Both the position numbers and the translations under genes were made by a program. 64,000 nt of DNA from Octopus sinensis (Eukaryota): assembly GCF_006345805.1 (NCBI RefSeq), contig NW_021832392.1:3815-67814 (forward strand), read 5' to 3'. The notes under the pieces are model-generated. The model saw only the letters and a program-made list of their open reading frames with translations, was not told the origin of the DNA and ran no database searches. Shown here one piece after another: positions 795 to 61,860 of the stretch. Positions within the stretch are counted from its first letter, which is position 1, and each line of letters opens with the position of its first letter.

Positions 795-1172
795 GTAGAC
801 GGAGAACCCGGGGAAGAGGTAGAGGGAGGAAGAAGAACTAAAAGAAGGACTGAAAGAGCTAAAGGAAGAGCTCAAGCAGGACCAAAGGGTGAAACAACCA
901 GGAATGGAAGTGGAACTGCAAAGGATGGAAACAAACAGCGCCGACGGGTGTGTAGGTTCTACCTGAGAGGTACCTGCTGGCATGGAAAGGAAGGTGCAGG
1001 CTGCCGCTTTGCACATCGGGGACCCTGCCGCAGAGACACGAGGCAGATGGACAAGCCATCAACACAAGGAAAAGGGAAGGTCCACGCACCACCTGCCTCA
1101 AAGCGGAGGTACGCAGATGTTGTGCGTGCCACAAACCGCAAACATGATGTTGTTAAAAAGGGCAGCTGCTGA
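795..1172 (+). pseudogene. LINE ORF1 C-terminal remnant with Cx7Cx8Cx3H (CCCH) zinc finger
   Basis: The frame is open from the 5' junction at 795 (VDGEPGEE...) through CRFYLRGTCWHGKEGAGCRFAH to TGA at 1170-1172. Confidence 0.7.
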
Positions 1173-1299
1173 GCAGCAATCTTTTTTGTGCATGGCACAA
1201 AAGATTGTACAGCAGCTGACCTGGCTTCATCAAACCCAAGCCCGCAGGTGGGACTACCCACTATATACAAGACCACCACAGCAAACAGACCCAGGATGG

Positions 1300-4287
1300 A
1301 CACCGCCGGCAACAACATACACCTCACCTCGATGCTCCTACTGAACATCAGAGGGCTGCAAACACTCAGTAACAGGACAAAGATCCCGTTCTTGAGAGAC
1401 TTTGTTGCATGCAATCAAGTTTATGCATAGCACTTGCAGAAACGCACCTGAAACCGGACATAGCAGATGCGGAGTTACACATACCACAGTATGTTGTACT
1501 ACGGACCGACAGAAAAGAAAGGAGTCATGGAGGAGTTGCTATGTACATCCGTGAGGACCTCACACCCCAGGTCCTCTTGTCATACTCAAACTCGGTGTGT
1601 GACACACTAATTGTACATATAAGGCAACTTGATGTAGTTGTGTTGCTACATATCGCCCTCCAGATGCCCCAAGCCATGTGGGCAAGTTTGAAGACTGCCT
1701 TATAAAAATAGAAGTTCTAATCACATTAGAACAACACATAAGTGTACTTCTTATGGGAGACTTCAATCTACCCAATGTCAGATGGCCCGAGGGCCTTTCT
1801 CTCCCAGGAATGACAAGATGTGAACGAGGACAGGCGAGGTCCCTCCTGAACCTCATCAACACCCTGTACATGGAGCAAGTAATACTCCAACCAACCAGGG
1901 CAGGTAACACACTGGATCTCTACTTCACAAATAATATGGATCTCATCCATAATGTGAAAGTGACACCGACACTACTCTCGGATCACAACATGGTAGAGCT
2001 GACCATGTACGGGCCAAAAGAAAGCACGGACATGCAGCCTACAAGAAACCCTCAGAATCTTTCCAGCTTGAACTACCATAAGGCAAACTGGAAACAAATT
2101 GAGAAAGAGATCCTCAAACAAAACTGGCCTAAATGTCTCTCCTCGCCAGACATCGACGTGAAACTTCAACAATTCATGTCTGTGACGCAAGCCATATGCT
2201 ACAAATGTGTCCCAGAGAGAAAGGCCACTGTACACAAGAACAAAATCCCCAGAGAGAGGAAAATCTTAATGAGACGGCGTACAAAAATTTCAAATCGCCT
2301 AAACAAACAGATTGAAAGCAGTGAAAAGTCCCGCCTGAAAATAAAACTGTTGGAAATTGAAAAATGTCTGCAACTCTCCCATGAAAAGGAAAGAGCAGAC
2401 AAAGAAGCCTGGACTATAGACAACATAAAATCTAACCCCAGAGCTTTCTACAGGTATGCCAAAGAAACAGCTACGGTGCACTGTAGGATAGGGCCACTCC
2501 TTGAAGAGGATGGTACACTCACAGGAAAACCAATGAGGGTAAGTGAAATACTGAATGAGCAATTCAAGAGTGTTTTCATTCCACCCCTCGGGCATTTCCA
2601 AATCACCAATCCAACTGACTTCTTTACCACTGCAGATATAAAATCAGAGGCGGCGACGATAAATTACATCGATATAAAGGAAGACGATGTAATAAAGGCC
2701 ATAGATGAAATGAAAACAGAATCAGCTATTGGCCCCGATGGATTCCCGGCAATCCTCCTAAAAGTATGTAAGAGAGTCCTAGCAAGACCACTGCAGATCC
2801 TCTTTCAGAGCTTCCTAGCAGCTGGCAAACTTCCAAAAAAACTGAAGGAAGGTAAAATATGTCCTATTCATAAAGGTGGTAGCAGAGCAGAGGCCAAGAA
2901 CTACAGACCTATCTCTCTCACCTCACACATCAGCAAGGTCATGGAACGAATAGTCAGAAGGAAACTAATCACCTTCCTTGAAGAAAATGACTTGCTGCCT
3001 GACACCCAACATGGTTTCCGACCAGGAAGAAGCTGTTTAGCTCAGCTCCTACAACACTATGACTGGGTGCTGAAACAACTGCTCAACCACTCAAATGTGG
3101 AAGTCATATATCTCGACTTTGCAAAGGCCTTTGATAAAGTCGATCATGGAATGATATGTCACAAACTGCGTGATCTTGGCATAGTTGGAAAATTGGGAGA
3201 ATGGCTTCATGACTTTCTGAAGAATAGAAGTCAGGTGGTAGCAGCCAATGAGGCCACTTCCATTAACACACAAATAGTGAGCGGTGTTCCGCAGGGCACT
3301 GTTTTGGGACCACTACTGTTCATAATGGCCCTCTCAGACATGCCCTCAGCCACGCAGAGAGCCACGATCACAAGTTATGCAGATGATACAAAAGTTTCAC
3401 AGGCAATACAGAACCCTGAAGACGCTAAGCACCTGCAATGTGAGCTGGACGAAATATACAAGTGGGCTGAAAAGAATAGCATGCAGTTCAATGCTGAAAA
3501 GTTTCAAGCTTTATACTATCAGCATGCAAAACTAAATGCAATACCCAATGAATACACTGGACCCGGAGGAATAGCAATCCCAGAGGCACAATCAGTGCGT
3601 GACCTGGGTATTTACGTGAGTGATGACGCAACCTTTCGTGTTCATGTTGCTAAATTGGCAATGAAATGTAGACGGCTGGCCGGATGGATTCTCAGAACCT
3701 TTAGAACAAGAGAACAAGAAACCATGATGGTCCTCTGGAGGACACTTGTCCTAAGCCACTTTGACTATTGCTCTTAGTTATTATCAACATCCAGTGTCAA
3801 GTTGATCACAGAGCTCGAGGCGATCCAGCGTAGCTACACGAAGAAGATAGCCTCTATGCAGAATGTAAGCTACTGGGAAAGACTCAAGAGATTAAAACTA
3901 TATTCCTTGGAGCGTAGGCGGGGAAGATATGCCATAATATACATCTGGAAGATCCTGGAGGGACGTGTCCCAAACTTTGGCATCGAGAGTTACACAAATG
4001 CCAGAACTGGGCGCCACTACGTGGTGCCTAGGACTCCAAATTTGCCATCAAGATGTAGGACACGATACTGTGATAGCCCGAGCTTCCGTGGCCCACAGCT
4101 CTTCAATATCCTCCCGAAGAACCTGAGAGACCTGCATGGGGTGGATGCAGATGTCTTTAAAATGGAACTGGATTTCTTCCTGTCAGGTGTCCCAGATGAA
4201 CCAACTTCACGGCAGGAGGTGCAGATGAGGGCAGCTGCATCGAACTCTCTCATGCACCAAATGGCAGTTGCTAAAAAGCTTTCGTGA
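1300..4287 (+). pseudogene. LINE ORF2 (AP endonuclease + reverse transcriptase), disrupted
   Basis: Pieces 1188-1430, 1409-1705, 1678-3777 and 3778-4287 are joined by frameshifts near 1420 and 1660 and an in-frame TAG at 3775-3777. YADD lies at ~3376-3387. Confidence 0.92.
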
Positions 4288-4372
4288 AGTAAAACCAAGT
4301 AGCAACACCAAATGGCGGTGCCCCAGCATGGCCACAGCTCATGAGCTGAAACTAGAATCAATCAATCAATCA

Positions 4373-4432
<60 letters not shown>

Positions 4433-4531
4433 TATGTATATGTAGATGTATGTATGAATGTATCTATTCTTAGAAGTATGTTACATATACACACACGTTT
4501 ATATATATGTACACACATACGTTCATACATA

Positions 4532-4598
<67 letters not shown>

Positions 4599-4627
4599 GT
4601 AAATACATATCTATATGTATGTATATA

Positions 4628-4835
4628 TTACTCTTTTACTCTTTTACTTGTTTCAGTCATTTTGACTGCGGCCAAGCTGGAGCACCGCCTTTAGTCGATC
4701 AAATCGACCCCGGGACTTATTCTTTGTAAGCTTAGTACTCATTCTATCGGTCTACTTTGCCGAACCGCTAAGTGACGTAAACACACTAGCATCGGTTGTC
4801 AAGCAATGCTAGGAGGACAAACACAGACACAACAA

Positions 4836-4886
<51 letters not shown>

Positions 4887-5068
4887 TATATATATATATA
4901 TATATACGACAGGCTTCTTTCAGTTTCCGTCTACCAAATCCACTCACAAGGCATTGGTCGGCCCGGGGCTATAGCGGAAGACACTTGCCCAAGATGCCAC
5001 GCAGTGGGACTGAACCCGGAGCCATGTGGTTGGTTAGCAAGCTACTTACCACACAGCTACTCCTGCGC
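4628..5068 (-). mobile_element. tRNA-derived SINE, dominant family
   Basis: Same head, internal microsatellite and tail as 62-482. Confidence 0.88.
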
Positions 5069-5069
5069 C

Positions 5070-6007: not shown

Positions 6008-6084
6008 TGTATGTATGTATGTATGTATGTATGTATGTATGTATGTGTGTATATGTGTATGCATGTATGTGTGTGTGTGTGCGT

Positions 6085-6300
6085 GTCTGTGCTTGTGATT
6101 GTCCTCCACCACTGCTTGACAACGAATGTTGGTTTGTTTACATCCCTGTCACCTAGTGGTTTGACAAAGGAAACAGATAGAATAAGTACAATGCTTACAA
6201 AAATAAAACTGGAGTTGATTCATTAAACTACAATTCTTTAAGGCATTGCCCCATCATGGCCACAGACCAATGGCTTGAAAAAGCAGAAGAATAAAAGAAT
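6085..6300 (+). mobile_element. Diverged SINE 3' half (older subfamily); second copy at ~46885-47100
   Basis: Contains CTTGACAAC...GATAGAATAAGTAC and GCCCCATCATGGCCACAG...GAATAAAAGAAT, homologous to the dominant SINE tail. Confidence 0.7.
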
Positions 6301-6349: not shown

Positions 6350-6630
6350 ACATGAGAAGGCCTAACAGACCTGGTATAAACAGCAGCCAAATCTCCCTCA
6401 AATCACACCTCATTGTCTTATGTATGTATATATATATGAGCCAATGAGGGGGACCTCTACATGGTAGCTAGACCTGGTAGAAATAGCAGCCAAATTTCCC
6501 CCAAATCACACCTTACTGTCTTATCTATGTATATATGTATGTATGAGCCTATGAGGGAGACCCCTACATGGCAGCTAGACATGGTAGAAATAGCAGCCAA
6601 ATCTCCCTCAAATCACTCAAATCACATTAC
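6350..6630 (+). repeat. Three tandem ~100-bp units built on GTAGAAATAGCAGCCAAAT...CAAATCAC
   Basis: The motif occurs at ~6375, 6475 and 6582 and again at 47145-47290. The shorter TGCTAGAAATAGCAGC motif recurs throughout the window. Confidence 0.75.
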
Positions 6631-7539: not shown

Positions 7540-8568
7540 ATATATGTTTTTATTTTCCTTGTTTCAGTCATCTGACTGTGGCCATGCTGGAGCACCGCCT
7601 TTAGTCGAGCAAATCGATCCCAAGACTTATTCTTTTCAAGCCTAGCGTTTCTTACCAAGCGGCTAATTGACGGGGATGTAAACACGCCAGCATCGGTTGT
7701 CAAGCGATGTTGAAGGGGGACAAACAGACACACACACTCACACACACACATATATGTATACATTTATATACGATGGGCTTCTTTCAGTTTCCATCTACAA
7801 AATCTATTCATAAATACACACACACACACACACACACACATATGTGTGCTTTCCTTTCTGTGTCTGCGTGCGCGCGTTTCCAGTTCATTGCTTGTGCGTG
7901 TGCGTGTGTGTGTGCGCTCTAGTGTGTGCGTGTGAGTGTGTAACTGTGTATTTTCATTTGTGTGTGTGTGTGTGTGTGTGTGGTGTTTGTCTGTATGTAT
8001 GTATGTGTGCGTGTGTGAGTGTGAGTGTGCGTGTGTATTTTCGTTTCTGTGTGCGAGTGTTTGAGTGTGTAACTGTGTTTTTTCAATTTTGTGCGTTTAT
8101 GTTTGTGGAGGTTTGTGTGTGTATCGTTACGCACGCACGCACTGGTGTCGAAAGGCACAAACGCACACATACACACACACAATTGAAAACACAATCACAC
8201 ACGCACACACCTTTTCCCTGAGTTGCTTAGCAACGGGTAATAATAGAGAAGAATAGTTTTATATTGAGAGGGAGAGAGAAACTTATATGTTGTATAGTGA
8301 GTTAAATACAGACAGACAGACAGACAGAGAGAGGTAGACAGAGAGAGAGGGGTAGACAGAGAGAGAGAAGAAGGCCTTAAGTACTGATGAAATTAAATGG
8401 CGTGAGTGGGTGGGTCAGCAAAAGATACAGAAAATTCAGGTATCCTGTCAACAGAAACTTTGCATTTCCAATTCTGTCTCAGATACAATCTAACTTTACA
8501 ATGGCAAACGAAATGAAATGTATATTTCAAGTCAGCGATAATCGGAAGATTTTAAAAATACACGCAGA

Positions 8569-9478: not shown

Positions 9479-10060
9479 AATATCTATATATATATATATA
9501 TATATATATCTATATATATAATAATACATATATATAGGGCGCAGAGTGGCTGTGTGGTAAGTAGCTTGTCTACCAACCACATGGTTGCGGGTTCAGTCCC
9601 ACTGAGTGTGTATTTGTGTGTCTGTGTTTGTCCCCTAGCATTGCTTGACAACCGATGCTGGTGTGCTTATGTCCCCGATCGGCAAGAGAGACCGATAGAA
9701 TAAGTACTGGGATTGCAAAAGAATAAGTCCCGGGGTCAAGTTGCTCGACTAATGGCGGTGCTCCAGCATGGCCGCAGTCAAATGACTGAAACAAGTAAAA
9801 GAAAAGAATAAAAGAATATATATATGTACCAGTTTCGCACTTGGGTCGATGTAATCGACTTAATCCCTTTGTCTGTCCTTGTTTGTCCCCTCTATGTTTA
9901 GCCCCTTGTGGGTAGTAAATATATAGATATATAGATATTTCAAAATAGAAAATTACGCTTTAACAGGTAATTTCTACATGCTAGAAGTAGCAGCAAAATC
10001 TTGGCACGATCCATTATTTTCTGGCAAATTATGAAGTCCCGCAGAGATGTATGTATATGT
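7540..10060. repeat. Composite ~2.5-kb macro-unit (SINE tail, TG/CA tracts, duplicated GTTGCTTAGCAACGGG subunit, SINE); other copies at ~20165-21790, 23870-25560, 27640-28500 (partial), 33715-36240
   Basis: Shared unique strings such as GAAATTAAATGGCGTGAGTGG...ACAATGGCAAACGAAATG and CGAACGCTACAGTAGCTAAACC occur in the same order in several copies; individual copies lack some of them. Confidence 0.85.
9537..9806 (+). mobile_element. Dominant SINE, plus strand, with internal deletion; paralogue at 35728-36004
   Basis: The head GGCGCAGAGTGGCTGTGTGGT...GGTTCAGTCCC joins directly to the tail, which ends GACTGAAACAAGTAAAAGAAAAGAATA. Confidence 0.85.
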
Positions 10061-10679: not shown

Positions 10680-10719
<40 letters not shown>

Positions 10720-10744
10720 TACGTAATTATCTATAGTATGTATA

Positions 10745-11146
10745 TATTACTCTTTTCTCTTTACTGTTCAGTCATTTGACTACGGCCAAGCTGGAGCACC
10801 GCCTTTAGTCGATCAAATCGACCCCGGGACTTATTCTTTGTAAGCTTAGTACTTATTCTATCGGTATCTTTTGCCGAACCGCTAAGTGACGAGGACGTAA
10901 ACACACGAGCATCGGTCGTCGAGCAATGTTAGGGGCACAAACACAGACACAAACACACACACACACATATATATATACATATATACGACAGGCTTCTTTC
11001 AGTTTCCGTCTACCAAATCCACTGACAAGGCATTGGTCGGCCCGGGGCTATAGCAGAAGACACTTGCCCAAGATGCCACGCAGTGGGACTGAACCCGGAG
11101 CCATGTGGCTGGTTAGCAAGCTACTTACTACAGAGCCACTCCTGCG
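10745..11146 (-). mobile_element. Dominant SINE, full length
   Basis: Near-identical to 62-482, including the downstream flank CTATATTCATTTTTCTGC. Confidence 0.85.
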
Positions 11147-11302
11147 ACTATATTCATTTTTCTGCATTTAACACAGCTGAGACGCCGTACACTCACACAT
11201 GTATGTGCATGTATACACATAAATATATATGTTTATATATGCAATAGAAATATGCACGCATATGTATGTATAAGTTTATATATATATAAGTTTAATATAA
11301 TA

Positions 11303-11335
<33 letters not shown>

Positions 11336-11513
11336 ATATATATATACATCATACATATATACCTACATATAGATATGTATTTACGTATGTGTGTATATAT
11401 ATATATAATATATATATATATGTAGATGTATGTATGAATGTATCTATTCTTAGAAATATGTTACATATACACACACGTTTATATATATGTACACACATAC
11501 GTTCATACATATC

Positions 11514-11570
<57 letters not shown>

Positions 11571-11819
11571 GTAAATACATATCTATATGTATGTATATAT
11601 TACTCTTTTACTCTTTTACTTGTTTCAGTCATTTTGACTGCGGCCATGCTGGAGCACCGCCTTTAGTCGATCAAATCGACCCCGGGACTTATTCTTTGTA
11701 AGCTTAGTACTCATTCTATCGGTCTACTTTGCCGAACCGCTAAGTGACGTAAACACACTAGCATCGGTTGTCAAGCAATGCTAGGGGGACAAACACAGAC
11801 ACACAAACACACACACACG

Positions 11820-11872
<53 letters not shown>

Positions 11873-14229: not shown

Positions 14230-14234
<5 letters not shown>

Positions 14235-14275
<41 letters not shown>

Positions 14276-21939: not shown

Positions 21940-22312
<373 letters not shown>

Positions 22313-22354
22313 CTTATTTTATCGAACTTTCGTTAGCTTTGGCTGCCATTTCTC

Positions 22355-23340
22355 AAATCGTCAATGAAGAAGCAGACCGAACTGAACTCCAGTCTGATCT
22401 ATATGCTGTGAGTCAATGGGCAGACAGAAACAAAATGCAACTGAACGAGGGAAAATTTGAGCTGATGCATTTTGGAAGAAACTCCTCACTAAAACAGCCA
22501 TACTCTCTTCCTTCAGGGGAACCGCTCACAGCCTCTGACAATATCAGAGACCTGGGTGTAATTGTTGATGACGATCTCAGTTGGAGTGCACACATCAACA
22601 AGAAGGTCGATATAGCTCGTAGGATGAGTTCCTGGATCTTAAGAACTTTCCGGTCCAGAGAACAAGGTGTCATCATATCACTTTTTTCCTCCTTTGTACG
22701 GCCACACCTTGAATACTGCTGCCCACTGTGGTCTCCTCACACAAGACAAAACATCTCCAGAATTGAGTCACCCCAGAGGGCACTCACTAAACGCATTGAA
22801 GGCATGGCTGCTCTCGATTATTGGGATCGCCTTAAAGCCTTGAAACTTTACTCCCTCCAGCGTCGCCGTGAGCGGTACATCATTTGTACGATGTGGAAAA
22901 TATACCGTCAACTTTGCCCAAACGACCTAAACATTAGCTTCAAGTTCATCCAAGACTTGGACCACGGGCTATACGTCCCCTGCCCAATTCAAGATCACAA
23001 CATACATGTACACTGCAGCACAATTTCTTTTCCTCAACAGGCCCTGCCCTATTTAACATTGTCCCGAGAGAGATCAAAGAGGAAAAGGATCCCATCAACT
23101 TTAAACAGAGTCTGGATAGATTCCTTCAAAGAATACCAGATAAGCCACCCATAATTGGATATAACTCACCCAACAAGAACTCACTACTTGAACAAAACTG
23201 GATACAACTCACCCAACAAGAACTCACTACTTGAACAAAACTTGACTTAAACAAAACTTGACTTAAACAGGATTCGAATAATCCTATCAGGTGGTGCTAT
23301 TAAGTTAGACATGGCCTGGACCAATCTTTGTTCGAAACAT
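22355..23340 (+). mobile_element. 3' fragment of a second Proto2/CR1-group LINE
   Basis: Reads LQSDLYAVSQWADRNKMQL...IRDLGVIVDDDL...LYSLQRRRERYIICTMWKI; after a frameshift near 22940 it continues LDRFLQRIPDKPPIIGYNSPNKNSLL. The tail is (ATCTAAGTTT)2 followed by (AT)n. Confidence 0.88.
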
Positions 23341-23529: not shown

Positions 23530-23572
<43 letters not shown>

Positions 23573-26074: not shown

Positions 26075-26144
26075 GGAGAGAGAGATAGAGAGAGAGAGAG
26101 AGACTTATTTTATCGAACTTTCGTTAGCTTTGGCTGCCATTTCT

Positions 26145-46804: not shown

Positions 46805-47829
46805 TATATATATACACACATATATATATATATATGTATGTATGTATGTGTGTATATGTGTATGCATGTATGTGTGTGTGTGCGTGTCTGTGCTTGTGAT
46901 TGTCCTCCACCACTGCTTGACAACGAATGTTGGTTTGTTTACATCCCTGTCACCTAGTGATTTGACAAAGGAAACAGATAGAATAAGTACAATGCTTACA
47001 AAAATAAAACTGGAGTTGATTCATTAAACTACAATTCTTCAAGGCATTGCCCCAGCATGGCCACAGACCAATGGCTGGAAAAAGCAGAAGAATAAAAGAA
47101 TACAGGCATGAGAAAGCTTGAGTTTACATGAGAAGGCCTAACAGACCTGGTAGAAACAGCAGCCAAATCTCCCTCAAATCACACCTTACTGTCTTATGTA
47201 TGTATATATATATGAGCCAATGAGGGGGACCTCTACATGGTAGCTAGACCTGGTAGAAATAGCAGCCAAATTTCCCCCAAATCACACCTTACTGTCTTTA
47301 GAAACACATACATACACACGGCGTATGTTGATGCATGTATGAATGTATGTATTCTTAGAAATATGTTACATATACACACACGTTTATATATATGTACACA
47401 CATACTTACATACATATCTATATGTATATATATATATATATATAATATATATACACATACGTAAATACATATCTATATGTATGTATATATTACTCTTTTA
47501 CTCTTTTACTTGTTTCAGTCATTTGCCTGTGGCCATGCTGGAGCACTGCCTTTAGTCGAGGAAATCGACAACAGGACTTATATTTTGTAAGCCTATTGCT
47601 AATTCTATCGTTCTCTATTTGCCGAACCGCTAAGTACGTTATGTTATCGTAGTTTTGTTAGCTTTGGCTGCTATTTCTAGCATATAGCTGGCCTGCTTGA
47701 AGGCCTATATGTCGAGAATTATCTCCGCTTACTTGCCATCGAACAGAAAATTTGAAATTAATTGGGTCCCCGGATACGTTGCTACGGTTTCAAACTAAAC
47801 TGAGGTATATATATATATATATATATATT

Positions 47830-47901
<72 letters not shown>

Positions 47902-48356
47902 TATATATATACATACATATATATATATATATATATAATATATATATACATATATATATATATATACCTACTATATACTATATATAGCATACATATTATA
48001 TATATATATATCTATATCTAATATATATATATATATATATATAATTATACTACTATATATATATATATATATTATATAATAATATATATATATATAATAT
48101 ATATATATATATATGTATATATAATATATATATGTATATATGTATATATATTCTAGAAAATTACCCTTTACAGTAATTTTTACATGCTAGAAATAGCAGC
48201 CATAAACCCCAATTTTATGTTTGGCTGCTATTTCTAGCATGTAAAAATTACCTGTTAAAGAGTAATTTTCTATTCTGAAATACGAATATGTTGTCTATTG
48301 ACTTTTTATACGTGCTAGGCCATTGGTGGTGATATATATATATATATATATATATA

Positions 48357-48421
<65 letters not shown>

Positions 48422-48994
48422 TATTTACGACGGGTCTTCCTTTAGTTTCCGTCTACCAGATCCACTAAAAAGGCTTTGGTCGGCCGAGGTTATAGTAGAA
48501 GACACTCGCCCAAAGTGCCACGCAGTGGGACTGAACCCGGAACCATGTGCTTGGCAGAGACTTATCTCCGCTTACTCGCCATCGCACTTAAATCCGGCAA
48601 CAGAAAATTTGAAATTAATTGGGTCCCCGGATACGTTGCTACGGTTTCAAACTAAACTGAGGTAAGGCATTTGAATTTCATTTGGGCCCATTTGACGAAT
48701 AAGTCCTGGGGTCGATTTGCTCGACTAAAAAAAAAAAAAGGCTGGTGCTCCAGCATGGCCGCTGTGGAAATGAGTGAAACAAGTAAAAGAGTAAAGGGTA
48801 TACTGTATAGGTTTAAGAGCCATGGTAATATTTATATGTGATGAAATGTTGACCATAAGTAAAATTTACATCCAGTCTCGGACTAATTTTATCTTTGGCT
48901 GCTATTTCTAGCATATAGATAGCCTGCTTGAAGGCATGAAGGGTATGTATATATATATATATATATTATATATATATATGTTCTTTTATTTAAC

Positions 48995-49195
48995 TTGTTT
49001 CAGTCATTTGTCTGTGGCCATGCTGGAGCACTGCCTTTAGTCGAGCAAATCGACACCAGGACTTATATTTTGTAAGCCTATTGCTTATTCTATCGTTCTC
49101 TATTTGCCGAACCGCTAATTAAGTTATGTTATCGTAGTTTTGTTAACTTTGGCTGCTGTTTCTAGCATATAGATAGCCTGCTTGAAGGCCTGAAT

Positions 49196-49244
<49 letters not shown>

Positions 49245-49620
49245 TTATATATATGTTCTTTTATTTAACTTGTTTCAGTCATTTGTCTGTGGCCATGCTG
49301 GAGCACTGCCTTTAGTCGAGCAAATCGACCCCAAGACTTATTCTTTTTAAGCCTATCGTTTCTTGCCGAGCCGCTAATTGACGGGGATGTAAACACCCCA
49401 GCATCGGTTGTCAAGTGATGTGGGGGGGGGACAAACAGACACACACACTCACACACATATATATATGTATATATATTTATATACGATGGGCTTCTTTCAG
49501 TTTCCATCTACTAAATCTATTCATACACACACACACATATATATATGTATGTATATGTATATATATATATATGTATGTATATGTATATATATATATATAT
49601 ATGTATGTATATGTATATAT

Positions 49621-49652
<32 letters not shown>

Positions 49653-49668
49653 GTATGTATATGTATAT

Positions 49669-49700
<32 letters not shown>

Positions 49701-50422
49701 GTATGTATATGTATATATATATATGTATGTATATGTATATATATATATATGTATATGTATGTATATGTATATGTATGTATATGTATATATATGTATATGT
49801 ATATATATGTATATGTATGTATATGTATATGTATGTATATGTATGTATATGTATATGTACGAACACATTTGCGAACACACACTGACGCTCGACTTTCCAT
49901 CACTCAACAGATAAGGTAAATTGATTTTGTAATTTACTTTTTGTCGCTAAATTTTGGTAGCGTACGTTCTTGAAAAATGGAAATTTTACACAATTTTTCC
50001 TGAATCCTCATCTTTCACTTAACTGAAAAAAAAAAACAAAATCCGCATTTTTTCATCACTTTTCCAGAATTATCTCTTCTTACTATTTCTTTATTTTCTA
50101 TTAATTCTTATTCTTTTTTTGGGTGTGGGCCAAATACGTAAAATATACAAAGATTTGAACTCTGATAGAAATTTCCGAGGTGGCACCTCGGGTAAGTGAT
50201 TTGTTTCAGTCATTTGCCTGTGCCATGCTGGAGCACTGCCTTTAGTCGAGCAAATCGACACCAGGACTTATATTTTGTAAGCCTATTGCTTATTCTATCG
50301 TTCTCTATTTGCCGAACCGGTAATTAAGTTATGTTATCGTATTTTGTTAACTTTGGCTGCTATTTCTAGCATATAGATAGCCTGCTTGAAGGCCTGAATG
50401 GTAAATATATATATATAATATC

Positions 50423-50466
<44 letters not shown>

Positions 50467-50709
50467 TAATATTTATATTTTATATATATGTTCTTTTATT
50501 TACATTGTTTCAGTCATTTGTGTGTGGCCATGCTGGAGCACTGCCTTTAGTCGAGCAAATCGACCCCAAGACTTATTCTTTTTAAGCCTATCGTTTCTTG
50601 CCGAGCCGCTAATTGACGGGGATGTAAACACCCCAGCATCGGTTGTCAAGTGATGTGGGGGGGGAGGACAAATAGACACACACACTCACACACATATATA
50701 TATGTATAT

Positions 50710-50741
<32 letters not shown>

Positions 50742-53699
50742 GTATGTATATGTATATATGTATGTATATGTATATATATATATGTATGTATATGTATATA
50801 TATATATGTATATGTATGTATATGTATATGTATGTATATGTATATATATGTATATGTATATATATGTATATGTATGTATATGTATGTATATGTATATGTA
50901 TGTATATGTACGAACACATTTGCGAACACACACTGACGCTCGACTTTCCATCACTCAACAGATAAGGTAAATTGATTTTGTAATTTACTTTTTGTCGCTA
51001 AATTTTGGTAGCGTACGTTCTTGAAAAATGGAAATTTTACACAATTTTTCCTGAATCCTCATCTTTCACTTAACTGAAAAAAAAAAACAAAATCCGCATT
51101 TTTTCACTTTTTCCAGAATTATCTCTTCTTACTATTTCTTTATTTTCTATTTAATTCTTATTATTTTTTTGGGTGTGGGCCAAATACGTAAAATATACAA
51201 AGATTTGAACTCTGATAGAAATTTCCGAGGTGGCACCTCGGGTAAGTGATTTGTTTCAGTCATTTGCCTGTGGCCATGCTGGAGCACTGCCTTTAGTCGA
51301 GCAAATCGACACCAGGACTTATATTTTGTAAGCCTATTGCTTATTCTATCGTTCTCTATTTGCCGAACCGCTAATTAAGTTATGTTATCGTAGTTTTGTT
51401 AACTTTGGCTGCTATTTCTAGCATATAGATAGCCTGCTTGAAGGCCTGAATGGTATATATATATATATATATATAATATATATATATATATTTATATATT
51501 TATATATATGTTCTTTTATTTAACTTGTTTCAGTCATTTGTCTGTGGCCATGCTGGAGCACTGCCTTTAGTCGAGCAAATCGATCCCAAGACATTCTTTT
51601 TAAGCCTATCGTTTCTTGCCGATCCGCTAATTGACGGGGATGTAAACACCCCAGCATCGGTTGTCAAGCGATGTGGGGTGGGGGGACAAACACACACTCA
51701 CACATATATATATGTATATATATATATTTATATACGATTGGCTTCTTTAAGTTTCCATCTACTAAATCTATTCATACACACACACACACACACACATATA
51801 TATATGTATGTATATGTATATATATATATATGTATGTATATATATATATGTATGTATATGTATATATATATATATGTATGTATATGTATATATATATATG
51901 TATGTATATGTATATATATATATATATGTATGTATATGTATATATATATGTATGTATATGTATATATATATATATGTATGTATATGTATATATATATATG
52001 TATGTATATGTATATATATATATATGTATGTATATGTATATATATATGTATGTATATGTATATATATATGTATGTATATGTATATATATATATGTATGTA
52101 TATGTATATATATGTATGTATATGTATGTATGTATATGTATATATATGTATATGTATGTATATGTATATATATGTATATGTATGTATATGTATATATATA
52201 TATGTATGTATATGTATATATATATATGTATGTATATGTATATATATGTATATGTATGTATATGTATGTATATGTATGTATATGTATGTATGTATGTATA
52301 TATATGTATATGTATGTATATGTATGTATATGTATGTATATGTATGTATGGTATGTGTATGTATATATATGTATATATATGTATATATATATGTATGTAT
52401 ATGTATGTATATGTATATATATGTATATGTATATATATGTATGTGTATATATATGTGTGTGTATATATATGTGTGTATATATATATACATATATAATATA
52501 TATATATATATATCTATCTTATGATAAAAGGCCCACACAGGAAGTGTGGTTGTAAGTGAAGTGCTTTTGTTAGTGTGTGTAAAGAGCCAGAGAAAGTAAT
52601 GTTGTGCTGTGTGTGTATGTGTGAAAGACAGACATCACTTTTTTTATTCACTGTTTGTAGTGTGTGACTGAGAGAGAAAAGAAGAGAGAGAGGTTATGTA
52701 TGTATGGCTTTAGCGACACACACACAAAAACTCATACCAACGTTACACCGAAAGCGCGCGCACACAAACGTAACGGGCTCTATCTGTCTGGTTTGCCATT
52801 CCTCACACACACACATACACACGCAAACATGTGTGTATTTGTTATTAGTATAAAAGGCGCCAAACAATATTCAGTTTCTCATTCGAACACATTTGCGAAC
52901 ACACACTGACGCTCGACTTTCCATCACTCAACAGATAAGGTAAATTGATTTTGTAATTTACTTTTTGTCGCTAAATTTTGGTAGCGTACGTTCTTGAAAA
53001 ATGGAAATTTTACACAATTTTTCCTGAATCCTCATCTTTCACTTAACTGAAAAAAAAAAACAAAATCCGCATTTTTTCACTTTTTCCAGAATTATCTCTT
53101 CTTAATTATTTCTTTACTTTCTATTTAATTCTTATTATTTTTTTGGGTGTGGGCCAAATACGTAAAATATACAAAGATTTGAACTCTGATAGAAATTTCC
53201 GAGGTGGCACCTCGGGTAAGTGATTTGTTTCAGTCATTTGCCTGTGGCCATGCTGGAGCACTGCCTTTAGTCGAGCAAATCGACACCAGGACTTATATTT
53301 TGTAAGCCTATTGCTTATTCTATCGTTCTTTATTTGCCGAACCGCTAATTAAGTTATGTTATCGTAGTTTTGTTAACTTTGGCTGCTATTTCTAGCATAT
53401 AGATAGCCTGCTTGAAGGCCTGAATGGTAAATATATATATATATATATCTATATATATATTTATATATTTATATATATGTTCTTTTATTTACATTGTTTC
53501 AGTCATTTGTGTGTGGCCATGCTGGAGCACTGCCTTTAGTCGAGCAAATCGACCCCAAGACTTATTCTTTTTAAGCCTATCGTTTCTTGCCGAGCCGCTA
53601 ATTGACGGGGATGTAAACACCCCAGCATCGGTTGTCAAGTGATGGGGGGGGGGGAGGACAAATAGACACACACACTCACACACATATATATATGTATAT

Positions 53700-53731
<32 letters not shown>

Positions 53732-54442
53732 GTATGTATATGTATATATGTATGTATATGTATATATATATATGTATGTATATGTATATATATATATGTA
53801 TATGTATGTATATGTATATGTATGTATATGTATATATATGTATATGTATATATATGTATATGTATGTATATGTATGTATATGTATATGTATGTATATGTA
53901 CGAACACATTTGCGAACACACACTGACGCTCGACTTTCCATCACTCAACAGATAAGGTAAATTGATTTTGTAATTTACTTTTTGTCGCTAAATTTTGGTA
54001 GCGTACGTTCTTGAAAAATGGAAATTTTACACAATTTTTCCTGAATCCTCATCTTTCACTTAACTGAAAACAAAAAACAAAATCCGCATTTTTTCACTTT
54101 TTCCAGAATTATCTCTTCTTAATTATTTCTTTACTTTCTATTTAATTCTTCTTATTTTTTTGGGTGTGGGCCAAATACGTAAAATATACAAAGATTTGAA
54201 CTCTGATAGAAATTTCCGAGGTGGCACCTCGGGTAAGTGATTTGTTTCAGTCATTTGCCTGTGGCCATGCTGGAGCACTGCCTTTAGTCGAGCAAATCGA
54301 CACCAGGACTTATATTTTGTAAGCCTATTGCTTATTCTATCGTTCTTTATTTGCCGAACCGCTAATTAAGTTATGTTATCGTAGTTTTGTTAACTTTGGC
54401 TGCTATTTCTAGCATATAGATAGCCTGCTTGAAGGCCTGAAT

Positions 54443-54508
<66 letters not shown>

Positions 54509-54858
54509 TATATATATTTATATATTTATATATATGTTCTTTTATTTAACTTGTTTCAGTCATTTGTCTGTGGCCATACTGGAGCACTGCCTTTAGTCGA
54601 GCAAATCGACCCCAAGACTTATTCTTTTTAAGCCTTTCGTTTCTTGCCGAGCCGCTAATTGACGGGGATGTAAACACCCCAGCATCGGTTGTCAAGTGAT
54701 GTGGGGGGGGGGGACAAACAGACACACACACTCACACACATATATATATGTATATATATTTATATACGATGGGCTTCTTTCAGTTTCCATCTACTAAATC
54801 TATTCATACACATACACACATATATGTGTGTATATGTATATATATATGTATGTATATG

Positions 54859-54889
<31 letters not shown>

Positions 54890-54968
54890 ATGTATATATA
54901 TATATGTATATGTATATATATATATGTATGTATGTATATATATATATATGTATGTATTGTATATATAT

Positions 54969-55002
<34 letters not shown>

Positions 55003-55398
55003 GTATATTATATATATATATATAATGTATATATATATGTAATGTATATATATGTAATGTATATATATATGTAATGTATATATATATATGTATATGTATA
55101 TATTATATATGTATATATATATTGTATATATATATAATATGTATATGTATATTATATATATGTATATGTATATATATATATGTATTGTATATATATATAT
55201 ATGTATGTATATATATATGTATGTATATATATATATATATGTATGTATATGTATATATATATATGTATGTATATGTATATATATATGTATGTATATGTAT
55301 ATATATATATGTATGTATATGTATATATATATATGTATGATATATATATATATGTATATATATATGTATGTATAGTATATATATATATATAATGTATG

Positions 55399-55429
<31 letters not shown>

Positions 55430-55496
55430 GTATGTATATGTATATATTATATATATGTATGTTATGTATATGTATATATATATATATATATGTATG

Positions 55497-55528
<32 letters not shown>

Positions 55529-56632
55529 TATGTATATATATATATATATGTATGTTATGTATATATATATATATGTATGTTATGTATATATATATATATG
55601 TATGTTATGTATATTATATATATATGTAATGTATATATATATATATTGTATGTATATGTATATATATATATATATGTATGTATATGTATATATATATATA
55701 TATGTATGTATGTTATATATATATATATATATGTATGTATATGTATATATATATATATGTATGTATATGTATATATATATATATATGTATGTATATGTTA
55801 TATATATATATGTATGTATATGTATATTATATATATATGTATGTATATGTATATATATATATATATGTATGTATGTATATATATATATAGTATGTATATA
55901 TATATTATGTATGTATATGATATATATATATATATATGTATGTATAATGTATATATATATGTATGTATATATATATATATGTATGTATATATAATATATA
56001 TATATATATATGTATATATATGTATATGTATATATATATGTATATGTATTATATATGTATATGTTATATATATGTATGTATATGTATATAATATGTATAT
56101 GTATATATATATATATATATATATGTAATGTATATATATATATATATATATGTATGTATATGTATATATATATATATGTATGATATGTATATATATATAT
56201 ATATTATGTATATATGTATATATAATATATGTATGTATATATATATATGTATGTATATGTATATATATATATATGTATGTATATATATATATATATGTAT
56301 GTATATATATTATATATATATATGTATGTATATAATATATATATTATATATATATATGTTATATATGTATATGTATGTATATGTATATTATATATATGTA
56401 TATGTAATATATGTATATGTATATATGTATGTATATGTATATATAGTATATATATGTATATATATTATATATGTATATATAATATATATATATGTATATA
56501 TGTATATATATATGTATTATGTATATATATATATATGTATAATGTATATATATGTATATATATATATATATGTATATGTATATATATATATGTATATATG
56601 TATATGTATATATATGTATATGTATGTATATG

Positions 56633-56681
<49 letters not shown>

Positions 56682-57368
56682 GTATGTATATGTATATATA
56701 TATATATATGTATATATGTATATGTATATGTATGTATATGTATATATATGTATATGTATATATATGTATATGTATATATATGTATATGTATGTATATGTA
56801 TGTATATGTATATGTATGTATATGTACGAACACATTTGCGAACACACACTGACGCTCGACTTTCCATCACTCAACAGATAAGGTAAATTGATTTTGTAAT
56901 TTACTTTTTGTCGCTAAATTTTGGTAGCGTACGTTCTTGAAAAATGGAAATTTTACACAATTTTTCCTGAATCCTCATCTTTCACTTAACTGAAAAAAAA
57001 AAACAAAATCTGCATTTTTTCACTTTTTCCAGAATTTTCTCTTCTTACTTATTTCTTTATTTTCTATTTAATTCTTATTATTTTTTTGGGTGTGGGCCAA
57101 ATACGTAAAATATACAAAGATTTGAACTCTGATAGAAATTTCCGAGGTGGCACCTCGGGTAAGTGATTTGTTTCAGTCATTTGCCTGTGGCCATGCTGGA
57201 GCACTGCCTTTAGTCGAGCAAATCGACACCAGGACTTATATTTTGTAAGCCTATTGCTTATTCTATCGTTCTTTATTTGCCGAACCGCTAATTAAGTTAT
57301 GTTATCGTAGTTTTGTTAACTTTGGCTGCTATTTCTAGCATATAGATAGCCTGCTTGAAGGCCTGAAT

Positions 57369-57410
<42 letters not shown>

Positions 57411-57777
57411 ATATGATATATATATATATATATTATATATATTATATATATATGTTCTTTTATTTAACTTGTTTCAGTCATTTGTCTGTGGCCATACTGG
57501 AGCACTGCCTTTAGTCGAGCAAATCGACCCCAAGACTTATTCTTTTTAAGCCTTTCGTTTCTTGCCGAGCCGCTAATTGACGGGGATGTAAACACCCCAG
57601 CATCGGTTGTCAAGTGATGTGGGGGGGGGGACAAACAGACACACACACTCACACACATATATATATGTATATATATTTATATACGATGGGCTTCTTTCAG
57701 TTTCCATCTACTAAATCTATTCATACACATACACACATATATGTGTGTATATGTATATATATATATGTATGTATATG

Positions 57778-57808
<31 letters not shown>

Positions 57809-57894
57809 ATGTATATATATATATGTATATGTATATATATATATGATGTATATATATATATATATGTATGTATATATATATATATATGTATATG

Positions 57895-57925
<31 letters not shown>

Positions 57926-57965
57926 GTATGTATATATATATATGTAATGTATATATATGTATATG

Positions 57966-57996
<31 letters not shown>

Positions 57997-58042
57997 GTAT
58001 ATATATTATATATATGTATATATATATATATATATGTATATG

Positions 58043-58102
<60 letters not shown>

Positions 58103-58147
58103 TATGTAATGTATATATATGTATATGTATATATATATATGTATATG

Positions 58148-58180
<33 letters not shown>

Positions 58181-59616
58181 GTATATAATATGTATGTATA
58201 TATGTATATGTATATATATATATGTATATATATGTATGTATATATATATATATGTATGTATATATATATGTATGTATATTATATATATATGTATGTATAT
58301 GTATATATATATATGTATGTATATGTATATATATTATGTATGTATATGTATTATATATATGTATGTATATGTATATATATATATGTATGTATATTATATA
58401 TATATATATATGTATGTATATATATATATATATATATGTATATGTATATATATATATATGTTATGTATATGTATATATATATATATATGTATGTATATGT
58501 TATATATATATATATGTATGTATATATGTATATATATATATATATATGTATGTATATGATATATATATATATATATTATGTATATGTATATATATATATA
58601 TATGTATGTATATGTATAATATATATATATATGTATGTATATGTATATATATATATATGTATGTATATGTATATATAATATATATATGTATGTATATGTA
58701 TATATATTATATATGTATGTATATGTATATATATTATATGTATGTATATGTATATATATATATATATGTATGTATATGTATATATATTATATGTATGTAT
58801 ATATGTATATATATATATATGTATGTAATGTATATATATATATATGTATGTATATGTATATATATTATATATATGTATGTATATGTATATATATATATAT
58901 ATGTATGTATATGTATATATATATATATATATATGTATGTATATATATATATATGTATGTATATATATATATATATGTATGTATATGTATATATATATAT
59001 GTATGTATATGTATATATATATGTATGTATATGTATATGTATATATATATATGTATGTATATGTATATATATATATATATATGTATGTATATGTATATAT
59101 ATATATATATGTATGTATATGTATATATATATATATATGTATGTATATGTATATATATATATATGTATGTATATGTATATATATATATATATATGTATAT
59201 GTATATATATATATATGTATGTATATGTATATATATATATATGTATGTATATGTATGTATATATATATATATGTATATTATATATATGTATATATATATA
59301 TATGTATGTAATATATATATATATGTATTATATATATATATGTATATATATATATTATTATATATATATATATATGTATATGTATATATATATGTATATG
59401 TATATATATGTATGTATATATATATATATTATGTATATGTATATATATATATATGTATGTATATATATATGTTATGTATATATATATATATATGTATGTA
59501 TATGTATATATATATATATATGTATGTATATATATATATATATATATGTATGTATATGTATATATATATATGTATGTATATGTATATATATATATGTTGT
59601 ATATATATATATGTTG

Positions 59617-59649
<33 letters not shown>

Positions 59650-59790
59650 ATTATATATATATATGTATTATATGTATATATATATATATGTATGTATATA
59701 TATATATGTAGTATATGTATATATATATATATATATGTATGTTATATATATATGTATATATATGTATGTATATATATATATATATGTATG

Positions 59791-59821
<31 letters not shown>

Positions 59822-60020
59822 ATATATATATATATGTATGTATAATATATATATATGTATGTATATATATATATATAGTATGTATGTATATATATTGTAT
59901 GTATATATATATATATATTATGTATATATATATATATATGTATGTATATATATATATATATGTATGTATATGTATATATATATGTATGTATATGTATATA
60001 TATATATATGTATGTATATG

Positions 60021-60067
<47 letters not shown>

Positions 60068-60250
60068 GTATATATATGTATATGTATGTATATGTATATA
60101 TATATATGTATATATATGTATATGTATGTATATGTATATATATATATATGTATATATATATATGTATGTATATGTATATATATATATGTATGTATATATA
60201 TATGTATGTATATATATATATGTATGTATATGTATATATGTATGTATATG

Positions 60251-60283
<33 letters not shown>

Positions 60284-60293
60284 GTATGTATAT

Positions 60294-60324
<31 letters not shown>

Positions 60325-60353
60325 ATGTATATATATGTATATGTATGTATATG

Positions 60354-60425
<72 letters not shown>

Positions 60426-61164
60426 ATATATGTATATGTATATGTATGTATATGTATATATATGTATATGTATATATATGTATATGTATATATATGTATA
60501 TGTATGTATATGTATGTATATGTATATGTATGTATATGTATATATATGTATATGTATATATATGTATATGTATATATATGTATATGTATGTATATGTATG
60601 TATATGTATATGTATGTATATGTACGAACACATTTGCGAACACACACTGACGCTCGACTTTCCATCACTCAACAGATAAGGTAAATTGATTTTGTAATTT
60701 ACTTTTTGTCGCTAAATTTTGGTAGCGTACGTTCTTGAAAAATGGAAATTTTACACAATTTTTCCTGAATCCTCATCTTTCACTTAACTGAAAAAAAAAA
60801 ACAAAATCTGCATTTTTTCACTTTTTCCAGAATTTTCTCTTCTTACTTATTTCTTTATTTTCTATTTAATTCTTATTATTTTTTTGGGTGTGGGCCAAAT
60901 ACGTAAAATATACAAAGATTTGAACTCTGATAGAAATTTCCGATGTGGCACCTCGGGTAAGTGATTTGTTTCAGTCATTTGCCTGTGGCCATGCTGGAGC
61001 ACTGCCTTTAGTCGAGCAAATCGACACCAGGACTTATATTTTGTAAGCCTATTGCTTATTCTATCGTTCTCTATTTGCCGAACCGCTAATTAAGTTATGT
61101 TATCGTAGTTTTGTTAACTTTGGCTGCTATTTCTAGCATATAGCCTGCTTGAAGGCCTGAATGG

Positions 61165-61198
<34 letters not shown>

Positions 61199-61490
61199 TT
61201 ATATATATGTTCTTTTATTTAACTTGTTTCAGTCATTTGTCTGTGGCCATACTGGAGCACTGCCTTTAGTCGAGCAAATCGACCCCAAGACTTATTCTTT
61301 TTAAGCCTATCGTTTCTTGCCGAGCCGCTAATTGACGGGGATGTAAACACCCCAGCATCGGTTGTCAAGTGATGTGGGGGGGGGGACAAACAGACACACA
61401 CACTCACACATATATATATGTATATATATTTATATACGATGGGCTTCTTTCAGTTTCCATCTACTAAATCTATTCATACACACACGCACA
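48995..61490. repeat. Tandem array of six complete units plus one partial (two SINE tails + hypervariable TA/TG microsatellite + ~330-bp unique segment)
   Basis: Unit starts lie near 48995, 50203, 51253, 53227, 54243, 57168 and 60967. The unique segment CGAACACATTTGCG...CCTCGGGTAAGTGAT occurs six times. Confidence 0.92.
52849..52945 (+). promoter_or_regulatory. Candidate Pol II core promoter (TATA + Inr) with a short first exon and 5' splice site
   Basis: TATAAAAG at 52849-52856; TCATTC (TCAKTY) with A at 52881, placing the TATA at -32; AAG|GTAAAT at 52939/52940. Confidence 0.4.
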
Positions 61491-61495
61491 CACAC

Positions 61496-61580
<85 letters not shown>

Positions 61581-61583
<3 letters not shown>

Positions 61584-61859: not shown

Positions 61860-61860
61860 T

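Follow-up and report, generated by a model that had tools for sequence, protein, structure and literature searches.

The eel elements UnaL2 and UnaSINE1 are a long interspersed nuclear element (LINE) of the L2 clade with stringent template choice and a short interspersed nuclear element (SINE), which share a 3' tail that is required for retrotransposition (PMC1636434). The zebrafish LINEs ZfL2-1 and ZfL2-2 are stringent as well. In these elements the region of open reading frame 2 (ORF2) between endonuclease (EN) and reverse transcriptase (RT) binds the cognate 3' stem-loop and is needed for retrotransposition, the stem being read generally and the loop specifically (PMC4176376). In amniotes the tails of the tRNA-headed TguSINE1 and PittSINE were copied from the 3' end of CR1, where a hairpin is used to bind the reverse transcriptase and priming depends on a terminal microsatellite; SINE and LINE tails are separated there by a few diagnostic substitutions (PMC5729268). 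In molluscs LINE/SINE tail sharing has been published for bivalves and gastropods (PMC4758252, PMC11481361). The tRNA-related HCD-SINEs of bivalves form a superfamily with several LINE partners; their tails are homologous to the 3' ends of CR1-Zenon, Nimb, CR1 and other LINEs, and related tails recur in different SINEs, but the survey is on bivalves only and octopus or cephalopod is absent from its text (PMC11481361). Here, we describe a stretch of 64,000 nucleotides (nt) from Octopus sinensis (assembly GCF_006345805.1, contig NW_021832392.1, positions 3,815 to 67,814 of the forward strand; in the following the window), in which one LINE copy and the most abundant SINE end in the same two-hairpin module.

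The hallmark of octopus genomes with respect to repeats is the expansion of SINEs, which account for 11.6% of the Octopus vulgaris genome and for about 40% of the transposable-element content of this species (PMC13282606, PMC8967140). In brain transcripts octopus SINEs are enriched (PMC9115989). Their autonomous partner is unnamed in the literature searched: queries including the literal tail strings revealed no octopus LINE–SINE tail pair and no named LINE partner, although an older report is possible. The octopus element RTE-2_OV is intact, transcribed and proposed to be active, but it is a member of the RTE clade, unlike the LINE of the window, and neither a two-hairpin module nor a SINE partnership was described for it (PMC9115989). 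Comparison of the window with related LINEs from ten other public assemblies suggests that a LINE family with this module is the probable partner of the dominant octopus SINE.

The common tail of LINE and SINE

The LINE of the window ends with AATGGCGGTGCCCCAGCATGGCCACAGCTCATGAGCTGAAAC (4311-4352) and the full-length SINE with AATGGCGGTGCTCCAGCATGGCCGCAGTCAAATGACTGAAAC (9751-9792). The first 27 nt show two differences (C/T at position 12 and A/G at position 24), CTGAAAC is common to both and, if aligned without gaps, 33 of the 42 positions match. In a blastn comparison within the 64-kb window 45-46 nt are aligned with 84.8% identity (E 3.5e-7). Both tails represent the last unique sequence of their own element before simple repeats start. 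Given that the two stretches mark the very 3' ends of the elements, the match is not due to chance and, judged from alignment and position, the 3' ends of LINE and SINE are homologous. The shared block begins at G4314; the preceding AAT fits only some SINE copies while most of them have TAAAGG.

The original prediction, which was made from the window alone, had pointed to exactly these two stretches, and the match is borne out as quoted. Also its statement about two differences in the first 27 nt and a common CTGAAAC turned out to be exact on re-reading. It had further claimed that the divergent middle of the tail still pairs in both elements, and folding indeed gives a 5-bp stem with a 4-nt loop in the LINE (CAGCTCATGAGCTG, 4335-4348) as well as in the SINE (CAGTCAAATGACTG, 9775-9788). 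The postulated stem-loop is kept by compensatory change, but it is not a single one, since the module is composed of two hairpins.

A covariance model (R1) was built for this module and the window was scanned with it at a threshold of E<=1e-4. This resulted in 34 tails, with the one at 4312-4352 being the only one located in a LINE. LINE and SINE tails attain 63-65 bits, and the remaining LINE fragments of the window show either no match or a weak match of <=12 bits. Rfam gave no match over the whole window at the gathering threshold; at permissive E-values LINE tail and SINE yielded noise only and neither a UnaL2-like nor a tRNA match.

Two hairpins and their covariation

The shared signal is a 39-base block (39-45 nt across the LINE family) with the hairpins SL1 and SL2 and a terminal AAAC (Table 1). 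In 14 LINE and SINE tails SL1 has the consensus GGYGGUGC-NCCA-GCAUGRCC with 18 of 20 positions invariant or nearly so, and its variation is confined to the first loop base and one wobble-tolerant pair (C-G / U-G / U-A). The consensus of SL2 is CAGCY-loop-RGCUG, i.e. a constant stem with a variable loop of 3-8 nt. This stem is present in every intact LINE tail sampled, in the loci L002 and L003 with 4 bp and a C.C mismatch at pair 5, and part of it was lost in the decayed tails of L010 and L011 (locus names as in Table 1).

Unguided folding of the tail alignment (A1) with RNAalifold returned two adjacent hairpins. Standard pairs occupy 97.6% of the cells, compared with 22-41% after a shift of the 3' partners by 1-3 columns, and none of 500 shuffles attained the observed pairing or covariation score. 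Changes on both sides of a pair are seen at SL1 pair 3 (C-G to U-G in L003 and L006 and to U-A in L008), at SL2 pair 5 (C-G in most LINEs, U-A in the window copy and L001) and at SL2 pair 4 (C-G in every LINE, U-A in the young SINE defined below). Folded as single sequences, all intact LINE tails and also the tail of the young SINE form the same two hairpins with -16.5 to -24.7 kcal/mol and z values of -1.5 to -3.5. The covariation evidence is good, not overwhelming, and the independent evolutionary events are few. Apart from this, the SL1 motif (GGTGCNCCAGCATGGCCNCAG) was found at 15 loci in JGI metagenome contigs; all are GC-rich bacterial coding sequence without hairpin 2 or AAAC and were rejected as chance occurrences.

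The tail in related LINEs

A test set beforehand was whether the tail belongs to the LINE family rather than to a single copy. DNA was fetched around homologous ORF2 proteins in other public assemblies, and the module was present just behind ORF2 in the 3' ends of ten more related LINEs, which stem from ten assemblies. All ten exhibit the same order, namely GGYGGTGC-NCCA-GCATGRCC, one base, CAGCY-(3 to 8 nt)-RGCTG, AAAC and short tandem repeats, and where the stop codon is intact the module starts within about 30 nt of it. Alignment A1 reveals no relationship between the LINE subfamilies in the part upstream of the first GG, and it shows that the limits of the LINE-conserved block are the exact limits of the block common to LINE and SINE. 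This identity of limits means that the tail is ancestral to the LINE lineage and that a chimeric origin is refuted. Intact ORF2s occur in other assemblies (P0001 with 1033 amino acids (aa), P0002 with 1041 aa and P0003 with 984 aa). For the two loci of a further homologue, P0177 (L012 and L013), the tail was not found within the contig.

P0001 shares 39% aa identity with a more distant LINE of the window (22312-23340, duplicate 26103-27113). The 3' end of this LINE, with a duplicate at 27063-27113, reads GGTGGTGC...CATGGCC, followed by a second stem, GAAAC and (ATCTAAGTTT)2, so that the layout is kept and the sequence is different. That this layout is retained at an aa identity of only 39% suggests that two stems followed by GAAAC and tandem repeats are an old arrangement in this LINE group.

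The LINE copy in the window and its clade

With the intact relative P0001 as query, tblastn covers 1188-4269 of the window in three frames with 69-88% aa identity, and the copy has 89% nt identity to L001. Its ORF2 has the natural stop codon at 4285-4287 but is interrupted by two frameshifts, the first near 1380-1418 and the second near 1642-1645, as well as by an in-frame stop at 3775-3777, and therefore this copy is dead. Upstream of ORF2 a short ORF (948-1172) shows a CCCH-like cysteine/histidine pattern (CRFYLRGTCWHGKEGAGCRFAH) and could be a remnant ORF1 or a zinc knuckle of the LINE. The contigs of L002 and L003 comprise merely 200-310 nt upstream of ORF2.

A local segmental duplicate at 10689-11871 corresponds to 1-797 plus 4376-4902 and lacks the LINE. 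Since this paralogue represents an empty site, the LINE was inserted after the local duplication and into (TA)n. The empty-site junction is blurred by (TA)n, and an exact target-site duplication of the window LINE is unreadable with both junctions lying within (TA)n. About 90 bp adjoining the 5' junction (700-797) are an inverted copy of 4425-4510 just past the LINE 3' end. At the corresponding place of the empty-site paralogue this arm is missing. It could reflect a rearrangement at the time of integration or a palindromic TA-rich target.

Full-length ORF2 homologues contain the Pfam domains PF03372/PF14529 (Exo_endo_phos) and PF00078 (RVT_1) as sole domains. This is the domain layout of the CR1/L2 group with an N-terminal apurinic/apyrimidinic endonuclease (APE) and RT, without RNase H and without restriction-enzyme-like (REL) endonuclease. 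The 3' end of the family is of CR1/L2 type too, with a hairpin in the 3' untranslated region (UTR) and then a microsatellite without poly(A). By eye, the C-terminal part of the window ORF2 (3802-4287) reads LEAIQRSYTK...SYWERLKRLKLYSLERRR...FRGPQLFNILP, and a CR1-like fragment on the opposite strand (14325-15785) has the same C-terminal pattern (SYEERL..LDLYSLEKRRRRRGDLI...WNKLP). We take SYxERLxxLxLYSLExRR...F...LFNxLP to be the C-terminal pattern of the CR1/L2 group, presumably in the fuller form LExxQRxxTK...SYxERLxxLxLxSLExRRxRxDxI...F..R....WNxLP. A sequence search of the PDB with intact ORF2 gave generic L1 ORF2p (EN + RT) and R2 matches only and was of no help for the clade. The original prediction had named the element Proto2-like. 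Proto2 was reported essentially from bivalves (PMC10294476), and the curated annotation of O. vulgaris comprises RTE, Dong-R4, CR1, L1-Tx1, Hero and R2 whereas Proto2 is absent (PMC13282606). In view of the CR1-type C-terminal motif, the APE/RT layout and the lack of Proto2 in published cephalopod annotations, this label is unsupported and probably wrong. From its sequence features we lean towards the CR1/L2 group for the window LINE, and this is to be understood as a tendency and not as a result.

SINE tail states and the probable driving LINE subfamily

Many of the 34 tails have identical downstream flanks, and thus they represent about nine independent SINE insertions and one LINE. Three states of the SINE tail can be distinguished. 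The young tail (9537, 11817, 7748 and others) has CAGTC-AAAT-GACTG with a perfect 5-bp stem, and in the intermediate tail SL2 is down to 3 bp. The older subfamily was claimed to have a tail closer to the LINE, and this was corroborated by the retained GCCCCA, the CCCA loop and the CAG(A)CC/GGCTG stem. The two copies cited for it (6255 and 47045) do have LINE-like tails, both keeping GCCCCA(G/T)CATGGCCACAG, but they are not two insertions: their shared flanks show that the tails at 6240-6281 (duplicate SINE 6074-6300) and 47041-47081 are paralogous copies of a single one. A 107-bp tandem repeat with 2.4 copies (6367-6616) is found just downstream of the former copy, and its sequence also follows the paralogous old SINE from 47105 onward. 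The full-length young SINE at 9537..9817 has a paralogous duplicate as well (35729-36009). Judged from similarity, the tail order would run from old via intermediate to young and, if this order is correct, the pairing of SL2 would have been restored by compensatory change within the SINE lineage.

LINE and SINE tails abut (TA)n in 21 of 34 cases against a background of 24%, with few independent events behind this count, and the SINE heads are preceded by ATATATAG. The common (TA)n context and ATATATAG fit one endonuclease or one priming preference. SINE tails also face each other tail to tail over short (AT)n (23770-23950, 27540-27720 and 33626-33800), which fits two opposite-strand insertions into one TA microsatellite. 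In many SINE copies (82-480, 4647-5069, 10767-11146 and others) head and body are split by 100-220 bp of (TG)n or (TA)n, and the full-length copy at 9537 has just a short GT-rich stretch where others have the microsatellite. Apparently, this internal SINE site seeds microsatellite growth.

If the core module only is considered, the LINE subfamilies are about equally near to the SINE with 31-36 of ~40 identical positions (35/40 in the window copy). Over the full tail including the terminal repeat a score of 37-38 is reached by L007 and L009, compared with 27 for the window copy. The SINE ends with AAGTAAAAGA(G/A)TAAAAGA, i.e. with an (RTAAAAGA)n terminal repeat. The ends of the sister subfamilies are GGTTAAAAGAATAAAAGAATAT in L007, CAGTAAAAGAATAAAAGAATAT in L009, TAGTAAAAGAAGGAAAAGAATA in L011 and TGTATAAAAGAATAT in the O. 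vulgaris copy of L010, and all four thus finish with (AAAAGAAT)n as the SINE does. Moreover, the SL1 loop of L007 is UCCA exactly as in the SINE. L001, which is 89% identical to the window copy, ends with TAGATAAAATGAAAA rather than (AATC)5. Since L007 and L009 outscore the window copy over the full tail, neither this copy nor its sub-lineage is the best-matching driver, and the SINE was probably driven by a sister subfamily ending in (AAAAGAAT)n and not by the (AATC)n type of the window. The original prediction had allowed for another LINE clade with a better match: no such clade was found, but a better match is provided by sister subfamilies within the same family. Its main proposal, that the LINE family of the window drives the dominant SINE, is accordingly supported at the level of the family and not for the individual copy.

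Proposed mechanism and alternative explanations

Because the SINE and ten related LINE copies have their tail in common, this LINE family is likely the engine of SINE copying, and we consider it probable that the module-bearing family copied the dominant SINE in trans. By analogy with the described pairs, the ORF2 protein would bind the 3' hairpins SL1 and SL2 of its own RNA, the terminal repeats would base-pair at the nick in the target, and this would be the starting point of target-primed reverse transcription. A SINE transcript of RNA polymerase III that ends in the module could then be taken as template in trans. In evolutionary terms the tail would have been transferred from LINE to SINE, leading from the old LINE-type tail through a state with weakened SL2 to the young one with restored SL2. 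The sequences show the homology of the tails, their ancestry in the LINE lineage, the structure with its covariation, the occurrence of both elements in one genome and relatives with intact ORF2, whereas trans-mobilisation, binding and the assignment of LINE subfamilies to SINE bursts are inferred. The published landscape of O. vulgaris shows a joint expansion of SINEs and LINEs with recently active CR1 families (PMC13282606). A more far-reaching reading, for and against which we see equal grounds, is that CR1-like LINEs have retained the module from a time before the Argonauta–Octopus split and that it became the recognition signal for an octopus-specific SINE expansion (about 12% of the O. 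vulgaris genome); the SINE lineage would then be a natural mutational series of SL2 with SL1 fixed, in which the stem was restored by a second-site change in the most successful subfamily, and SL1 might be read by sequence and SL2 by shape.

Two other origins of the common tail can be regarded as refuted. Short GC-rich stretches may resemble each other by chance, and SL1 alone does turn up in this way in GC-rich bacterial contigs, but such a coincidence is at odds with an E-value of 3.5e-7 in the window, with the same position at the 3' ends of the elements and with the conservation of the module across LINE subfamilies. Acquisition of a SINE tail by the window LINE, whether through gene conversion, a nested insertion or fusion into a chimera, might be expected where SINE copies are dense around the LINE and local duplications are frequent. 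It fails to account for the module at the same post-stop place in ten further LINE 3' ends of other assemblies and species, and the LINE-specific CCCA loop as well as the C-G at SL2 pair 4 are missing in young SINEs. As regards the driver, it is unlikely that the sub-lineage of the window copy mobilises the dominant SINE with its own tail. Its core module is as near to the SINE as that of other LINEs (35/40), its SL2 has the same length of 14 nt, and L001 (89% identical) possesses an intact ORF2 of 1033 aa and an end (TAGATAAAATGAAAA) nearer to the A-rich repeat of the SINE than (AATC)n. However, the full-tail score of 27 has to be compared with 37-38 for L007 and L009, it is L007 that has the UCCA loop of the SINE, and (AATC)5 resembles no SINE copy. 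We see still less reason to assume that the tail is a relic taken once from this LINE family and that most SINE copies go back to some other LINE whose recognition is relaxed or different, such as the RTE elements for which transcription in octopus brain was reported. RTE/BovB and Dong-R4 are abundant in octopus and RTE-2_OV is intact and transcribed (PMC9115989). Yet SL1 is nearly invariant across the SINE subfamilies and the pairing of SL2 is restored by a second-site change in the youngest, which argues for continuing selection on the module. In RTE-2_OV the ORF's end is where the microsatellite starts, without such a 3' UTR, and no other LINE fragment of the window matches the tail above 12 bits.

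Several points weigh against the proposed partnership of LINE family and SINE. The sample is limited to eleven tails of LINEs and, for the SINE, to about nine independent insertions, and the alignments include paralogous copies so that cell counts overstate the number of events. The window LINE copy is dead and has a terminal repeat, (AATC)5, unlike that of the SINE. The exact SL2 of the young SINE with U-A at pair 4 occurs in no sampled LINE, and the true master partner may be unsampled. Finally, the SINE head was not called as tRNA by ARAGORN or Rfam, neither in the window nor with a consensus of eight heads. By eye, TGGCTGTGTGG fits box A at 10 of 11 positions and GGTTCAGTCCC box B at 9 of 11, with the tRNA callers silent; a tRNA call forced from ARAGORN at low threshold was discarded as not credible.

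If the more far-reaching reading is true, the octopus SINE burst has for the first time an autonomous partner with a name. With a defined LINE family and a 39-nt signal it becomes testable by which LINE subfamily each SINE wave was driven, whether the LINE is active at present and whether SINEs are mobilised in octopus tissues. In addition, R1 is a specific probe for the annotation of SINE copies that pipelines leave as "unclassified SINE".

Table 1. Elements of the window (64,000 nt) and related LINE loci; identities for L006-L011 refer to the C-terminal query
Feature	Position or source	Strand	Remarks
Dead APE+RT LINE copy, CR1/L2-like, ~3.58 kb	798..4375	+	5' limit approximate
ORF2 remnant: endonuclease, reverse transcriptase, CR1-type C-terminal domain	1188..4287	+	tblastn with P0001; Pfam on homologues
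Variable 3' UTR spacer, differing between LINE subfamilies, absent from SINE	4288..4313	+	Alignment A1: homology begins sharply at column 25 = G4314
Hairpin SL1, GGCGGUGC-CCCA-GCAUGGCC	4314..4333	+	7 bp, G.G mismatch, 4-nt loop
Hairpin SL2, CAGCU-CAUG-AGCUG (CAGCTCATGAGCTG)	4335..4348	+	5 bp
AAAC after SL2	4349..4352	+	Invariant in 14/14 aligned tails
Terminal TAG + (AATC)5 of the LINE copy, continuing into (AT)n	4353..4375	+	
Dominant SINE copy, body and tail	7558..7748	-	
Full-length dominant SINE: tRNA-like head, body, LINE-type tail	9537..9817	+	
Tail module of the SINE: SL1 (UCCA loop), one linker base (G), SL2 CAGUC-AAAU-GACUG, AAAC	9754..9792	+	R1 65.4 bits
SINE terminal repeats AAGTAAAAGAAAAGAATAAAAGAAT	9793..9817	+	Unit is that of the L007, L009, L011 and L010 LINE tails
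Empty site: paralogue of both LINE flanks without LINE	10689..11871	+	Joined flanks 400-797 + 4376-4750 align end to end
Dominant SINE copy, body and tail	11619..11817	-	
Distant LINE 3' end of same layout: hairpin GGUGGUGC...CAUGGCC, then another stem, GAAAC and tandem repeats	23288..23338	+	R1: 12 bits, E 0.058
Older SINE subfamily, LINE-like tail (CCCA loop; SL2 CAG(A)CC-AAU-GGCUG; AGAATAAAAGAAT repeats)	46875..47105	+	Tail 47041-47081
Locally duplicated region, many intermediate SINE tails (SL2 CAG[G/A]C-AAAU-GACUG, pair 4 unpaired)	47509..61410	-	
Related LINE L001	Logan SRR20902413		88% aa identity to window
Related LINE L002	ENA ERZ23499442		63% aa identity to window
Related LINE L003	ENA ERZ4233750		61% aa identity to window
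Related LINE L004	Argonauta hians GCA_054771915.1		56% aa identity to window
Related LINE L006	ENA ERZ16768396		65% aa identity to window (C-terminal query)
Related LINE L007	ENA ERZ23499302		62% aa identity to window (C-terminal query)
Related LINE L008	ENA ERZ23499275		68% aa identity to window (C-terminal query)
Related LINE L009	NCBI GCA_024449705.1		72% aa identity to window (C-terminal query)
Related LINE L010, decayed copy	Octopus vulgaris OX597824.1 (GCA_951406725.2)		59% aa identity to window (C-terminal query)
Related LINE L011	Logan SRR32601320		60% aa identity to window (C-terminal query)

Other repeats in the window

A second LINE fragment (14225-15785, reverse strand) is clearly CR1-like with 35% aa identity to P0001. 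It has its own 3' UTR and then an (AACT)n/(TAAC)n tail at ~14225-14280, which does not match the SINE tail. Another LINE-like fragment (30069-32563) shows 30% aa identity to P0001 over the RT. A separate short repeat, accagtt.cgca..gggtcgatgtaatcgacttaatcc...tttgtcccctct, adjoins SINE copies at 9820-9900 and 23570-23660 and also adjoins the LINE in the unrelated contig of L003 (3232-3285); it probably represents another octopus SINE family with a Deu/Nin-like core.

The region 47500-61600 is a complex array of duplicated blocks of ~0.3-3 kb, each with one or two SINE 3' halves, and it is the source of most SINE tail counts in the window. It is interspersed with very long (AT)n (Tandem Repeats Finder row 54820-60621). 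Two mutually unrelated satellite arrays, each with a 116-bp unit, are located at 40021-43986 (34 copies at 92%) and 61860-63026 (10 copies at 95%). The unit of the former starts with a run of T, and GC-rich inverted repeats are present within it.

Comparison with known systems

Compared with the eel pair, the octopus module has an internal G.G mismatch in SL1, and the tail stem of UnaL2 is irregular too (PMC1636434). It differs from UnaL2 by two adjacent hairpins instead of one and by its mollusc host; the octopus tail has no sequence similarity to that of UnaL2 and no Rfam match. In size the octopus element (roughly 3.6 kb) is comparable with ZfL2-2, a single-ORF element of about 4.2 kb. In contrast with the ZfL2 elements, the loop of the octopus SL2 varies in length and sequence while SL1 is fixed, which means that specificity may lie in SL1. 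With the amniote CR1 system the octopus LINE has in common a C-terminal motif of ORF2 that, judged by eye, is of CR1 type. The hairpin sequence is different, however, and the terminal repeat is (RTAAAAGA)n or others in octopus instead of AUUCURUG. The octopus pairing is thus a further case of the known stringent sharing of tails between LINEs and SINEs and not a new principle.

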